From Oculina patagonica (Eukaryota): 64,000 nt of DNA. Positions 12,491 through 44,400 of this stretch are shown here, piece by piece. The stretch is from contig NC_135766.1 in assembly GCF_052425735.1 (NCBI RefSeq), positions 11,594,001 through 11,658,000 on the forward strand, in the 5' to 3' direction. The translations under genes were made by a program, and so were the position numbers. The notes beneath the pieces are model-generated. The model did no database searches, was not told the DNA's origin, and worked only from the letters and a program-made list of their open reading frames with translations. Each line of letters begins with the position of its first letter. The first letter of the stretch is position 1.

Positions 12491-13262
12491 AAACCATGCC
12501 GAATTCTGACCCTATTTTGATAAATTCAGACATATATATGACTACAGTTACGACTCCAATTTAGATTTTCACTACGTAACAAGCGCTTTGCAATTTGGCA
12601 TAAAGATCAGGATGCCCAAACACGAAGGGCATGTAGCAGACAGAAAAACACAGAATGTAGACACGCAAGAAAATATAGCGGAGACATGCTACAGCGACAC
12701 GTCCCCTGAAACGTGTTCCCGCCACATTTTCTGAGTGTGCACATACCGTGATCTTGTCACTGCTAAACGTACCTTCGTGTCAGGACCTGAAGTGGGCGAA
12801 TATTGTGTTATTAGTTTGATGGATCAAGTGGCTGGTTCAGACAGTATAAGCATAAGCTCATTCCGTATTAAATATCCTCTTTCTATACAAATATACAGGA
12901 AGTAACTTACTAACAAAACGAGCTAGGCCCATTCAAACGAGGGTAAAGAACTGAAAAAAAATGCGAAATATTTTGTATTTTCATTATTTTCTGACTTTAA
13001 TCTATTCGAGTTTCCAAGAATGAATATCTTGTCTTTGCGCTTCCTGTGGTTACCTAGAAAATAGTTAAAAGAACGTTTTTCTCTTTTTCATTTAAGTAAA
13101 GCGTATTAGCTACAGAAAGTAAACGTAAAACTTCTCAAAATACTATCTGATCCAATGGATTTAGAGACATACTGCTGCTGTTGCTTAGAGTACTTTTAAC
13201 AACAGCTACTTAAGGGAATATACCAAACATTTTTTCTAAGATTATAAAAATTTCGTTTTCCA

Positions 13263-13297
13263 CTATATTACAAAACGTTGCTCTTTGGACGCTGCAT
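13263..13297 (-). CDS. Last exon of gene C (alternative coding end DAASKEQRFVI*, or 3' UTR exon after the TM exon)
   Basis: Acceptor ttttattttacag|AT GCA GCG TCC AAA GAG CAA CGT. Paralogous exons begin at 40558 and 58104. Confidence 0.55.
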
Positions 13298-13509
13298 CTG
13301 TAAAATAAAATAAAGACATAAATAAATAATAATGAAAGGTACACGAACAAGTAAATATGAAGGAACTCGCCATAGGCAAGAAGAAGGAAAGAAATAAAAA
13401 AATGTTTAGTCTTCCCGACGCAAGTGGAATTCGACCTGTCTTTGCAGGGTTGAGGGCAGTCACTTTGATAATGATCTTTTCGTCAAGGCTGATTTGGATG
13501 GGTGTTTTA

Positions 13510-13815
13510 ATGGAGGGGGAGGAGGAGCTAGGGGAGGAGAGGACGAGGAGGGGCAGAAGAGNNNNNNNNNNNNNNNNNNNNNNNNNNNNNNNNNNNNNNN
13601 NNNNNNNNNNNNNNNNNNNNNNNNNNNNNNNNNNNNNNNNNNNNNNNNNNNNNNNNNNNNNNNNNNNNNNNNNNNNNNNNNNNNNNNNNNNNNNNNNNNN
13701 NNNNNNGAGGGGGGAGGGGGGGGGGGGGGAAGGGGGGGAGGAGAAGGAGGCAGAGGAGAAGGAGGAGCAGGAGAACCAGGACAAGGAGCAGGAGGACGAC
13801 GCCACCGACGAGACG
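13510..13815 (+). repeat. GA-rich purine low-complexity tract containing the assembly gap (N 13562-13706)
   Basis: GGAGGA-type repeats flank 145 N. A paralogous tract lies at ~40820-41125. Confidence 0.9.
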
Positions 13816-14584
13816 AAGGCATGGTAAACAAAGATAATTTAGTTCTTTACACTTTAATTTAGTTCTTACCACGTAGTGAATAATTAGTCAATGAAGAGCG
13901 ATTCAGCTGTGCAACTAAGAAATAGTTGGAATGGTAGTTTAAAACTTCATAAACTACTCCACCATAAGTTGCACAATACAAGCAACGTTGCTCAAAAACA
14001 ACACGCTAGTTAAAAAATTAACAAATTGAAACTACTCTTGAACGGTACGTTCCAGGAGATTTTTTAATGATCATGGTTGTGATTTTGTATATCCAGCTCT
14101 CCTCTTTTTCACCTACGGTCTCACCAATAGAACAGTTACCTACAAAGAGTTGTCAGTATAACAACCCAAATCATTTCTACATCAGGAAAGTAGCAGGTCA
14201 ATTTCGCATTTTTTTGTTGAAATGATGTCTCCTGTTTTATAAGTCAAATGAGTAAATAAGTCATGAGTCAGTAAGTCAAGCTAATTTTTGCACAAAGTAG
14301 GTTATCTATTATTCAAACGATGGTTTGCCTGTATATAAAATTACAAGCAGTCAACTTTGATTTCGGTTAGTTCCACGCCAATTTGCTTGCAGTTAGGTCC
14401 ACTTCAGTTTGCTTGCAGTTAGTTCCAATCTAGTTTGCTTGCGTTTAAATTTTACATCTTTTAGTAAGGGCAGCACCATTTTCAAATGAATAACTAAATA
14501 AAAAATGTGACTCATGACGCACTGACTTACAAAAACTTTAATCTCTGTTGAAATAACTATGATTAAGGAAAAAATAACTCACCC

Positions 14585-40558: not shown

Positions 40559-40819
40559 CTGTAAAATAAAATAAAATAAACAAATAGATAAACAAATAAT
40601 TAAAAAATTTAATTTTTAATTATTTAAAAATACAGAATTAAAAATATTGAGAGAAAAAAGGTGAGCATTAAGGCGAGAAGGGATAAATAGTTGACTCAAG
40701 TCGTTGTTGTTGGTGCATAATGATTTTCTCAAAACAAGTTTAAGCAATGCACACATTGAAAACGGTTGTTTTTTAGTCGGACGTACTTGAACTTGTTAAA
40801 CAAGCCAAGTATGACGCAG

Positions 40820-41125
40820 GGAAGGAGATGGAGGAGGAGCAGGAGGTGGTGGTGGTAGAAGAGCAGAAAAAGGAGAAAGCGGAGGGAGAGATAAAGGATA
40901 AGAACAAGAAAGAGAAGGAGAAGGAGGAGGAGAGGGCGGTGGAAGAGGAGTAGGAGGAAAAGGAGGGGAAGGAAGAGCTAAAAAAGGAGAATAGGCGATG
41001 GGAGAGCGAACGAGGAAGAGGAGGAGGAGAAGGAGAAGGATGAGGAGATGGAGGAGGACGAGGAGATGGTAGTAGTGGTTCAGGAGGAGGAGGAGGAGGA
41101 GGAGGAGGAGGAGGAGGAAACGACC
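40820..41125 (+). repeat. GA-rich / (GGA)n low-complexity tract
   Basis: Purine-rich run ending in (GGA)n. Same position relative to the last exon as the tract at 13510-13815. Confidence 0.9.
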
Positions 41126-41485
41126 TCATGGTAAAGAAAACATTTTGTTTCTGTCACTATACGATGAATGGGACATCTAACACACATTGTTAACACCGCC
41201 AGTTCTTCACGAGTACTTTGAAATAATTTGCCTAGAAAATGTTCGATTGGCGCAATTTACCAGACATTGCTTCTCCAATGTTGCGTTGACAGCAGTTGTC
41301 GTTATTTTTATGGCATGGCTTCTGCTAATATTCTAATAATCTGGTTCAATCTGAACAGAGGACTGCATCTACTGTGATCTACTTTGGCAATGGTTACTGA
41401 TTCGTAGCCACAGTGTCGAGTTTTAACCCAAAACGTCATCTGTAGCATTCATTGCTGTGTCTACAAGTACATTCCAGTTTTTCAG

Positions 41486-44400
41486 CTAATGCTGGACGTG
41501 CGTTGCTGTACCTAAGAAAAAGATATAGTGACTACATGAGAAATTGTGTTCTGCAAGCAAGGAACGTTTAAGGTGGAAGTTTTGACAAATCCATGCCATA
41601 AGCTACGATTTCACATTCGGCAAAATATACACAACCTAGGGTAAATAAATTTTATTGCTGCTGTTGACCTCACCGCCCGACACAAGCGTAATTCTCAGAC
41701 GGTCCAGGTCGCTTGCGGCCCACTCGCTCCCTTTCCGTCGCGTGGCCGTGAGCGACCTGGACCGTCTGAGCACCAGGTTAGTGTTTCTTAACGATCGCAG
41801 ATACTTAGATAATAGGATAACAAGAACTTATTTACTAGCTAGCGCATACCATGGACCATGTTCCACATCTTTTCTATAAGAGTTGCACACTGTTTCTCCC
41901 AGCTGTACTTCTTTTCATAAGATTCTCGTAGCATCTTGATCTCCTGTAGCTGATCTCCATGTCTTGCACGGACAGTCTTGATGGCCTTTGCCCAGTCCTT
42001 GGGCTCTTTTGAATCAACTATACAAAATGTGTCAAATTGTAGGTTCTGTATTGCTCTAGCAAAGCCTGAATTGGCACTCACAAGAATTGGCAGACCAGCA
42101 GATAAGGCTTCAAGAGCAATCAATCCAAAACCTTCACTCCTCGATGGCATAATGGCTAGATCAACTTCACAAAACAAGTCTTTCATTTTCTCTCTGCTTT
42201 TTACAAATTTTCTAACGGCCAGCTGCTCTTTAGCAACACCATAGTTGAGTAATTGTCTTGCTATCTCTTCTTCTTTTCCACCAGGGGCACCCACAAATAG
42301 AAGCCGATAAGGTTCTCCTTTCAGTTCCTGGTCAGCAAAGGCTTTAGCAGCAATGTCATATCCTTTCAGCTCGAAGTCTTCAGCATCACCACGGCCACAT
42401 AACAACACTTTGAACTCGGAACTCTCTTTAGGATCTAGCTTTAAATCTGTGAATTCCCTGAAAATTCCTGGGGTGAGCTCAAAAATATTTAGACCTTTCT
42501 TAGATCTCAGGTATGAAGAGTAAGCTTCTTTCAGTTTGGGTCCAATTGGTACGACAAGATCAGCCAGTTTGCAGAGATCAACTTCAGTCTGATGCTTTCT
42601 TTCATTCTTAGAAATCGCACCGGAATAACTCTTGAACATGCCAAGCTGTTCTGCATCAGTATGTACAACTTGAACCCACTTACAGTTGTATAATCGAGGT
42701 TCTCTTAGGATTTGTCCTTGACGGCCAATCTTTATACCATGACCAATAACAACATCCATGCTGAGGTCTTGCGGTGGGCAGATCAACCAATCATGGTGGT
42801 CGTACCCTGGGCGTTCCTTTGCCTCAACGACAGTAATGTCATAACTCTGAGCTGCCTTCTTGTGCACATCCGTACAAGCTCCCTCAGGGACTAAAAAAGC
42901 AACATCCACGTTAGGTTGCTCCGCCAAGTGAATAGCCAGCTCTCTGTTTAACGTTGACAAACCACCAGCAGATGAGGCCCACTCGTCAGCGAGAAGTGTA
43001 ACTTTCAAGGTTGTCGTGGTTCTAAAAGGACCTTTCCGCTCAGGTACGGCTTTTGGCGTAGAAGTTATGCCAACTCCAGGATCAACCTGCAAAAGATTAT
43101 CAGGAAGGCACAGGTGGCCTAATAAAACTACGAGAGGCGTATCAGATTCAACGCTCCAAATTCTACATCGATGATGCAAGGAAGTAAGTTGCTAATTGGC
43201 TGTTGATTGGTGACATCAGAAACATTTCATGAATCTGTGTCAAGCAACAATACGTTGGCATTTTTGGGCTCAAATGCTACTGGAGATAACTAGCAAAACG
43301 CCAAACCCATTTGAACTGATTTGAATTTGCTTCCAGGTTATCTCGCAATCGCGATATGTCTCTAAGATTCTCACAAAATTGATTAGTTAAGATTTTATTG
43401 TATATCCTCACACTGTCAGGCACTTCTTGTTCCGAACGCAATGTTCTTTATGGAGTGAAAGCTAGGCATCGGGGAGAAGGGATATGTAATAACAAAACAA
43501 CAGCTTACGATCAGTTGAGACGCACCTTTCGATAAAATGAGAGAAACAGATGGAAATATACGAGTGGTAATGTCTATAAACGCTTTTTTTTATTTTACCA
43601 CTTTTGCCAATTCTTTCTTACTATATAAACTTAGCACGATCCAGTCACGTGGTACAAAATAAGCTATGCTGGACGGTAAAAAAGCAATACTTTCATTGTG
43701 ATATTATTTTGGGTGTATTACTTGAAATCAACGGCTCAATATGGTTGATTTTATACCTGGTGACCGGCTCGTGCAAAAGACTTTTTAATTCATACATCCG
43801 GATAGTGTGGCACTTAATACAATACCGGACAATTCAGAAGTTACATCCATAGGCGTCAGGAAAACGAAGGATTTGAGGTGGAAGATGGCGGCACAGGAGG
43901 AATTACAATAACGGGTTATTATAGTTAATGCTGACATATTTTTTTGATTAATAAAAAATCTGAAAACGCACACTTATAAAGCGTAACTATCTCTAGGATT
44001 TGGCTTCATTTTGGGTCAAGGTGTGGCTAACATACTTCGCCTATATACGAAATGCCCCAGAACACCAAGATTGTCACCAAGAAGTCAACTAGCCTCGCGT
44101 TTGCGTATCCCACGGTAACACCCATTCAAAAGCTTCAACGCACTAGCATAGGAATATTTTAGGGTTTGGGCCATAACTAAGTATTTGTCTAAAGGAAAAA
44201 CTATAGTCGTTTTATAAGTCACGGTGGAAGATCCACTGTAATTTCATTGAGCGTCGAAGTAGCCCAAAGTGCAACATGTACAGCTCTGTCTTATACTTTA
44301 ACATGAGTAACTAGCTGGTAGTCACTCGTTTATCTTTACCTTGTCTACATCCTGTTCGTCCGGATTATCTGGCGCCTCCAGCCCTTGCTCTTCCATTGCA

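Follow-up and report, generated by a model that had tools for sequence, protein, structure and literature searches.

Corals possess a NACHT/NB-ARC repertoire in which glycosyl transferase group 1 domains occur (Hamada et al. 2013, summarised in PMC4083563; also PMC10236652). GT4 glycosyltransferases (GTs) have been described as the C-terminal effector of STAND nucleoside triphosphatases (NTPases) and of AP-GTPase(Roc)-COR proteins, with a predicted immune role, and Acropora digitifera has more than 500 GT4 paralogues (Kaur, Burroughs, Iyer and Aravind 2021, PMC8195603). In brown algae, LRR-ROCO and NB-ARC-TPR candidate receptors undergo exon shuffling (PMC3341825, PMC11378527). Here we analysed a 64,000-nt stretch of the Oculina patagonica genome (G000, GCF_052425735.1; 529 Mb), which covers positions 11594001-11658000 of contig C9 (NC_135766.1) and is referred to below as the window (GC content ~39%), and within it two genes, B and C, that carry closely similar GT4 exons behind unrelated P-loop platforms. 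We conclude that a 3'-terminal effector cassette was very probably re-assorted by intronic recombination among tandem P-loop sensor genes of unrelated classes, because the histories of cassette and platform disagree, the break in homology is intronic and the exon phases match.

The coral repertoire resembles this locus in combining a death-fold domain (DED or other) with NB-ARC, TPR and a GT, in the arrangement of genes in tandem pairs or triplets, and in that shuffling was proposed as a source of diversity. In those papers, however, shuffling, mainly of N-terminal effectors, was deduced from domain tables and trees, whereas here a C-terminal cassette could be traced in the DNA; unlike in those papers, it crosses to a Roc/COR GTPase platform, and its intronic boundaries and shared non-coding DNA were mapped. 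The conflict systems described by Kaur and colleagues likewise have GT4 in the C-terminal effector slot on both platform classes, but those fusions are bacterial and encoded by single open reading frames (ORFs), whereas the genes studied here are intron-containing animal genes that lie in one cluster and have one recently common cassette. The ROCO and NB-ARC-TPR classes of brown algae also diversify by recombination at exon boundaries; there, the exons that shuffle are repeats (LRR or TPR) and stay within a family, whereas at this locus it is an enzymatic terminal cassette that passes from family to family. Classical exon shuffling is an established process, as is the fusion of genes by unequal crossing-over or intergenic deletion. 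The locus shares with these processes breakpoints in introns, compatible phases and genes arrayed in tandem on one strand; unlike in the classical case, the GT exon is asymmetric (phase 0 to 1) and can move only at the 3' end, together with its stop codon and untranslated region (UTR), not as an inserted exon. Domain combinations and shuffling of this sort are already known, and what this locus adds is a case, resolved to the base, of one terminal cassette across two platform classes in an animal.

Gene B has the order Roc, COR-A-like exon, 251-aa exon in the COR-B position, GT; gene C has the order DED-NB-ARC, TPR, acidic exon, GT; and gene D is of the C type without a GT exon. They belong to a cluster of genes in tandem on one strand that spans C9 11.45-11.85 Mb, and the large ORFs of the window lie on the minus strand without exception. 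A Pfam scan of the window located GT4-conflict (PF20706) exons at 5015-6289, 16441-17694, 25194-26519 and 41839-43179, DED-like and NB-ARC domains at 47205-48953 and 61933-63354, and TPR at 44808-46262 and 59595-60647. The proposed cassette would comprise about 50 nt of intron, the 1.2-kb GT4 exon, a terminal exon with stop codon and 3' UTR, a CT-rich tract, a last-exon block and 3' flank. Its carriers would be the Roc/COR-type GTPase genes B and L003, the DED-NB-ARC-TPR-acidic ATPase genes C and L004, and L005, in a more distant NB-ARC-TPR-ZU5 context (L numbers denote other loci). The two GT exons are as follows:

16452-17688, minus strand: gene B, GT4-conflict exon of 1237 nt (PF20706, 281 bits), limits by homology and splice signals
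41850-43086, minus strand: gene C, GT4-conflict exon of 1237 nt (PF20706, 287.8 bits), both limits from splice joints

Both exons exceed the curated PF20706 cut-off of 26 bits, and both are entered in phase 0 and left in phase 1. The first-pass annotation of this DNA had described them as GT exons of equal length and as the most similar pair of the window, and both statements were borne out: in a self-blastn search, B 16432-17701 matched C 41830-43099 at 84.9% nucleotide identity over 1270 nt with no indels, and the proteins are 77.7% identical, whereas identity to the remaining GT exons of the window does not exceed 54%. The identical length is only mildly informative because other Roc-COR-GT genes have exons of ~1222-1234 nt; those of L004, L005 and L003 measure 1237, 1231 and 1222 nt. 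The EX7E motif (EGFGLI[AV]LE) is intact in B, where it reads EGFGLIVLE, and in C, L003, L004 and L005, and PDB matches of the C exon (residues 240-403, for the C-terminal half of the GT-B fold) were to GT-B type enzymes (GlgA, WaaG, MshA-type).

At least 99 GT4 copies were found in the genome, and 32 of these were placed in a GT tree. At the GT loci L014-L030, the ORFs lying upstream were too short for a platform to be assigned. B, L003, C, L004 and L005 formed one clade on a long stem (support 100/100) with the structure ((B,L003) 97/94, (L005,(C,L004)) 96/87). The expectation that the GTs of B and C would group together hence stood, while their being strict sisters was rejected, as the partner of B is L003 and that of C is L004, followed by L005. 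L003 lies at C9:11.82 Mb, 213 kb from B, with Roc and COR-side exons upstream of its GT; it was considered as a pseudogene and this was discarded, the 'TAG' falling past the donor of an intact 1222-nt exon. L004, at C9:11.51 Mb, is a near-identical duplicate of C (NB-ARC 98%, GT synonymous divergence (dS) 0.02). The L005 GT exon, at C9:11.667 Mb, follows a TPR exon and a ZU5-like ORF, and its NB-ARC-TPR subfamily is only 39-46% identical to that of C.

Pairwise dS in the GT clade was 0.29-0.40 (~0.36 for the B and C cassettes), compared with ~1.7 from the five-gene clade to the next GT clade. The ratio of non-synonymous to synonymous divergence (dN/dS) was 0.27-0.41, which indicates selective constraint on predicted glycosyltransferases only, and not sugar-transfer activity. 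For the platforms, dS was 0.40 (COR-side exon) and 0.48 (Roc) between B and L003, and 0.31 (NB-ARC) and 0.27 (TPR) between C and D. These values are similar to those of the cassette, and the events therefore fall in one old burst; judged by its dS of ~0.36, the cassette exchange is an old one, seen in at least five genes here and six in a second assembly.

Upstream of the GT exons the two genes consist of the following elements:

22561-22917 (ORF limits), minus strand: gene B, Roc GTPase exon with P-loop (Pfam Roc PF08477, 30.3 bits, profile positions 1-44)
21489-22349 (ORF limits), minus strand: gene B, second Roc exon (Pfam Roc, 31.2 bits), with paralogues found genome-wide
20011-20334 (ORF limits), minus strand: gene B, COR-A-like exon (COR-A 24.9 bits, under the 35.3 cut-off)
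18974-19714, minus strand: gene B, 251-aa exon in the COR-B position, phase-0 donor at 18974/18973 (ACTGAG/GTAAAA)
17689-18973, minus strand: gene B, pre-GT intron, with a dispersed transposable element, a stretch shared with L003, and a last ~50 nt common to C, L004 and L005
47205-48953 (ORF limits), minus strand: gene C, DED-like and NB-ARC exon (NB-ARC 43.3 bits, DED 20.4 bits)
44969-46262, minus strand: gene C, TPR exon (TPR_12, 110 bits), predicted phase-1 donor at 44969/44968
44340-44578, minus strand: gene C, acidic exon of 239 nt, phase 1 to phase 0, common to gene D
43087-44339, minus strand: gene C, pre-GT intron with a canonical joint

Both Roc exons of B are above the PF08477 cut-off of 27 bits, and in C the NB-ARC cut-off of 23.5 bits is met, with the DED score below its cut-off of 35.9 bits. 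The 251-aa exon of B (18974-19714) had no Pfam hit; it directly precedes the GT exon in all Roc-COR-GT paralogues. Splice data were drawn from contigs of four public runs mapped to 40200-46000, their run type, RNA, being only a guess. Canonical GT..AG joints on the minus strand were observed for the introns 43087-44339 and 41512-41849, each in three runs, and the contigs that connect the acidic, GT and terminal exons of C came from runs, guessed to be RNA, of two studies. The TPR to acidic junction of C was not seen in the contigs mapped to this interval.

In a five-gene alignment, B and L003 resembled C, L004 and L005 for only ~50 nt before the GT acceptor, so that homology between the two classes stops ~50 nt 5' of the acceptor and the upstream regions are, as had been claimed, unrelated. 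Pairs with the same platform share longer stretches of intron than cross-platform pairs: B 17742-17980 matches L003, and C 43793-43364 matches L005. The upstream donors at 18974 (B) and 44340 (C) are in phase 0, as is the GT acceptor. Because the COR-side exon of B and the acidic exon of C both end in phase 0, the reading frame would be kept after a swap, and because the GT exon is phase-asymmetric (0 to 1), it would move with its own terminator as a replacement of the 3' end. The B pre-GT intron is also enlarged by a non-autonomous element of ~620 bp with terminal inverted repeats (~18018-18637), of which there are at least 40 genome copies at 81-95% identity.

Downstream of the GT exons, the following elements were delineated:

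14585-14697, minus strand: gene B, predicted terminal exon with tail-anchor helix and stop codon, its frame fitting the phase-1 donor
13896-13979, minus strand: gene B, remnant of the intron that precedes a C-type terminal exon (nhmmer E 1.2e-6)
13511-13830, minus strand: gene B, CT-rich low-complexity tract after TTTACCATG, holding the assembly gap 13562-13706
12877-13510, minus strand: gene B, 'last-exon' block with acceptor-like ACAG and DAASKEQR..., then conserved non-coding DNA
12582-12876, minus strand: gene B, 3' flank, collinear with C, L004, L005 and D, with an inverted-repeat element at ~12613-12784 that resembles a miniature inverted-repeat transposable element
41261-41511, minus strand: gene C, terminal exon encoding G-T-A-T-H-V-Q-H, then the stop codon at 41488-41486; the remainder is 3' UTR
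40822-41140, minus strand: gene C, CT-rich tract after TTTACCATG
40201-40821, minus strand: gene C, 'last-exon' block, which groups with L005 and not with D in a block tree
39466-39958, minus strand: gene C, 3' flank, collinear with B, D and L005

Contigs covered 41261-41508 of the C terminal exon with 0-1 mismatches, and the GTxTHVQH-stop tail was conserved, by alignment, in L003, which is a Roc-COR gene, and in L004 and L005. The terminal block of C is a working terminal exon and not a decayed transmembrane exon. In B, a tail exon at 14642-14677 had been paired with C 41465-41497. This pairing was rejected as chance (E 1.4), the true counterpart in B being 13979-13896, which was detected at E 1.2e-6 with an nhmmer tail profile built from C, L003 and L005. 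After 13979-13896, ~300 nt of the C-type terminal exon body are missing in B. The predicted exon at 14697-14585 encodes ...NWNVLIIVAVLIGILAVIAYAVL followed by a stop codon, a tail-anchor-like end; it is not homologous to the C terminal exon, and a genome search with it gave a self-match only. B has lost the shared terminal exon and is predicted to end instead in a unique tail-anchor helix.

The GA-rich tract ending CATGGTAAA that had been noted on the plus strand was found in both genes, and corresponds on the sense strand to TTTACCATG followed by the CT-rich tract, ~311 nt in total in B and ~305 nt in C. The tract in B contains 13562-13706, the sole N run in the window. In C, the two sides of this run correspond to 40866 and 41042, 175 nt apart compared with 145 N, and B and C are therefore collinear across the gap; since the gap lies downstream of the predicted stop codon of B, the frame is unaffected by it. 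B 13857-12920 is collinear with C 41162-40210, in an alignment that crosses the N run, so that only its ends count. ORFs running through the gap (13263-13805 on the minus strand and 13357-13827 on the plus strand) were dismissed as low-complexity artefacts. The CT-rich tracts themselves (13822-13511 and 41132-40822, minus strand) start right after ACCATG and have a long proline-rich ORF on the sense strand, which is probably low-complexity DNA and not a gene, with a conserved ATG context. Rfam gave no match on 39400-41600.

The last-exon block is homologous between B 12920-13556 and C 40210-40866 (E 2.5e-31) and between B 12877-13477 and D 57650-58252 (E 2e-48). No splice joint to 40560 was present in the C contigs, so that of the shared last exon that had been claimed the homologous block stands, and in GT-bearing genes it is a putative exon. 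In the 3' flank, B 12858-12582 matches C 39958-39679. The similarity claimed there was confirmed as collinear over 12582-12857, except that ~80 nt of it (12627-12707) are the arm of a dispersed repeat with at least 40 copies. These repeats, the transposable element in the B pre-GT intron and the chance pairing of the tail exons would be in keeping with a reading in which the non-coding likeness arose by independent insertions of common repeats and the coding likeness is ordinary family paralogy. That reading is contradicted by the last-exon block, which has just eight genome matches, all at C9 11.50-11.83 Mb and all at the collinear position, and by the GT exons falling into one 100/100 clade. 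The collinear match in the 3' flank, furthermore, exceeds the repeat arm, its relative position does not differ between B, C, L004, L005 and D, and profiles of the tail block and the last-exon block found nothing in the flanks of 25 other GT loci. The non-coding similarity is, hence, mostly cluster-specific, and independent insertion is very improbable.

The re-assortment of the cassette can be followed further in gene C by comparison with D:

55851-63395, minus strand: gene D, GT-less DED-NB-ARC-TPR-acidic pseudogene, with no counterpart of C 44150-40822

Collinearity of C with D covers NB-ARC, TPR and the acidic exon and ends 117 nt into the next intron, at C 44224, and similarity to L057 in this intron reaches ~44150; neither D nor L057 has an equivalent of C 44150-40822. 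Homology between C and L005 runs unbroken between 43793 and 39466, and a weak match was also found at 43822-43906. Gene C accordingly switches from D/L057-like to L005-like DNA at ~43906-44150, inside the intron 43087-44339. The NB-ARC of C is 83% identical to that of D and 39% to that of the NB-ARC gene upstream of the L005 GT exon, whereas its last-exon block groups with L005 (100/99), apart from D and L057 (98/97). The 5' and 3' parts of C, as read from these alignments and trees, have different nearest relatives, with the junction within ~250 nt of intron. In D no more than ~170 nt separate the acidic exon (donor 58520) from the last-exon block (57650-58349), and the same GT-less junction recurs in a second pseudogene at C9:11.524-11.540 Mb; L057, a pseudogene with a stop in TPR, runs almost straight from the acidic exon into the last-exon block. 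D is disrupted by a TAA in its NB-ARC exon and an in-frame TAG in its acidic exon, and its TPR exon is frameshifted.

A discordance was also found within the Roc-COR family, where the COR-exon tree read ((B,L036) 99/97, (L037,L003) 87/90), and approximately unbiased (AU) tests rejected B+L003 (p 1e-4) and L036+L037 (p 1e-3). The 3' modules, contrary to this tree, pair B with L003, through the GT cassette, and L036 with L037, which share ~2 kb downstream of the COR-side exon (E 8e-280) unrelated to the downstream DNA of B. Homology of B to L036/L037 ends near 18880, ~90 nt past the phase-0 donor at 18974. There are hence at least three platform/cassette discordances, namely the sharing across classes, C versus D and L005, and that within the Roc-COR family, and these require recombination. 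L036/L058 (C9:11470000-11476124) and L037 (C7:2616349-2620110) are GT-less Roc-COR paralogues on different chromosomes.

It could be argued that both platforms gained GT exons anciently and independently, and that later gene conversion homogenised the GT and 3' DNA with no new chimera. Roc-COR-GT genes are ancient and widespread in the genome, STAND-GT4 and AP-GTPase-COR-GT4 fusions occur in bacteria and NACHT/NB-ARC proteins with GT in Acropora (PMC8195603, PMC4083563), and clustering of the genes on one strand favours conversion. The shared tract, however, measures 3.5-5 kb, takes in the 3' flank and has just one 5' boundary, which resembles a crossover or fusion more than a conversion patch, and no stretch of elevated identity was found along the GT exon. 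In addition, no GT hit was obtained for the closest platforms of the C type (D, L057, 11687898 and C9:19.28 Mb, the last two, like C5:12.87 Mb, judged from search coordinates) or of the B type (L036, L037 and L039-L042). Conversion onto independently acquired GT exons is therefore considered unlikely, and the chimera reported by the first-pass annotation, formed by recombination in an intron, is supported by a cassette that Roc and NB-ARC platforms share and by a break that is intronic.

The closest database proteins (76-85% identity) all came from one ENA assembly, in which the same architectures were found. Locus L060 of this second, coral-like assembly contains, in order, Roc, COR-side exon, GT, tail block and last-exon block, and then a C-type NB-ARC-TPR gene; L062 and L064 are Roc-COR-GT genes, and L061 is a C-type TPR - acidic - ZU5-like - GT gene. 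In a joint tree, eleven GTs (five here and six from the second assembly) formed one clade (100/100), in which the Roc-COR-linked GTs grouped together (94/99) and the TPR-linked GTs were basal (80/92). The nearest pair of GTs across assemblies was 88% identical in nucleotides, and no 1:1 orthologues were evident. These data bear on whether paralogues collapsed or mis-joined near the N gap could mimic chimeras, a concern raised by the one assembly gap in the 3' region of B and by a family so repetitive (at least 99 GT copies). Each architecture, however, occurs at two loci here (B and L003; C and L004) and both recur in the independent assembly, in C both the acidic/GT and the GT/terminal-exon junction are spanned by spliced contigs of independent runs, and the gap is downstream of the coding part with flanks collinear with C; an assembly artefact is accordingly highly implausible. 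A ZU5-like ORF was observed between the TPR and GT exons of the L005 gene (C9:11675463-11675900; L056:2464-2901, minus strand) and another in the TPR-acidic-ZU5-GT gene of the second assembly (L061:4113-4367), which suggests NB-ARC-TPR-(acidic)-ZU5-...-GT architectures.

Several points weigh against re-assortment between classes as the explanation. Roc-COR-GT is an old combination that also occurs in other parts of the genome (L006-L013, L019). The fused transcript of B and its tail-anchor exon are predictions from sequence only, and the COR assignment in B consists of the sub-threshold COR-A hit and position. The runs that gave the splice joints of C are only guessed to be RNA, and the groups compared in the AU tests were named only after the tree was known. 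D and L057, the C-type genes that have no GT, are pseudogenes, and a deletion could account for this state. Lastly, the rooted GT tree nests the Roc-COR copies only weakly (80/92) in a TPR grade. Given this weak rooting and GT-less relatives that are pseudogenes, either platform class may have been the donor, and either B or C the chimera. The pointers to an NB-ARC-TPR donor and a Roc-COR recipient are this rooting, the GT-less state of L036, L037 and L039-L042, and the last-exon block adjoining the acidic exon in D and L057; the pseudogene state of D and L057 and the age of Roc-COR-GT (L006-L013, L019) point against this polarity.

If the cassette was exchanged as we propose, the likely mechanism would be unequal crossing-over, or a deletion fusing same-strand neighbours in the C9 11.45-11.85 Mb cluster; in a later change, B lost the shared terminal exon, and it is predicted to end in the tail-anchor helix. 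Functionally, and by reference to PMC8195603, the NTPase platform may sense a signal, switch or oligomerise, and deploy GT4 as a glycosylating effector, with B probably anchored in a membrane and C and L003 soluble. A broader view is that the cluster is a standing 'plug-and-play' locus, in which the GT4 cassette and alternative 3' modules (L036/L037) are recurrently re-assorted among at least three P-loop platforms through recombination in the pre-cassette intron, a combinatorial germline pairing of sensor and effector conserved across corals and possibly still polymorphic. It would be a functional analogue of the exchange of C-terminal toxin cassettes in bacterial polymorphic toxin systems; we regard this extension as possible but rather doubtful.

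The NLR-like and GTPase-type sensor repertoires of corals are very large and poorly understood, with hundreds of GT4 domains. The finding of one effector module on both GTPase and STAND ATPase switches argues for GT4 as a self-contained output device. The short soluble tail of C and L003, versus the predicted membrane tail anchor of B, offers a natural contrast for effector location, and the locus supplies defined constructs (platform with or without cassette) for functional work.

Three further observations were made in the window. The GT4 exon at 25194-26519 (minus strand) lies 2.9 kb upstream of the Roc exons of B and may be either the N-terminus of B or a separate gene; the GT tree places it with C-terminal GT exons from other Roc-COR-GT genes (L006-L013). 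No COR-type exon was found upstream of it within the window, and the EX7E motif was not found in the part of this exon that was extracted. A 251-aa ORF at 34890-35645 (minus strand) has the same length as the COR-side exon of B and no similarity to it; it had no Pfam match and merely a weak GIY-YIG hit (E 0.08). Just downstream of the B 3' flank, a unit of ~194 bp is repeated in three tandem copies that are 96-98% identical (11614-12177).

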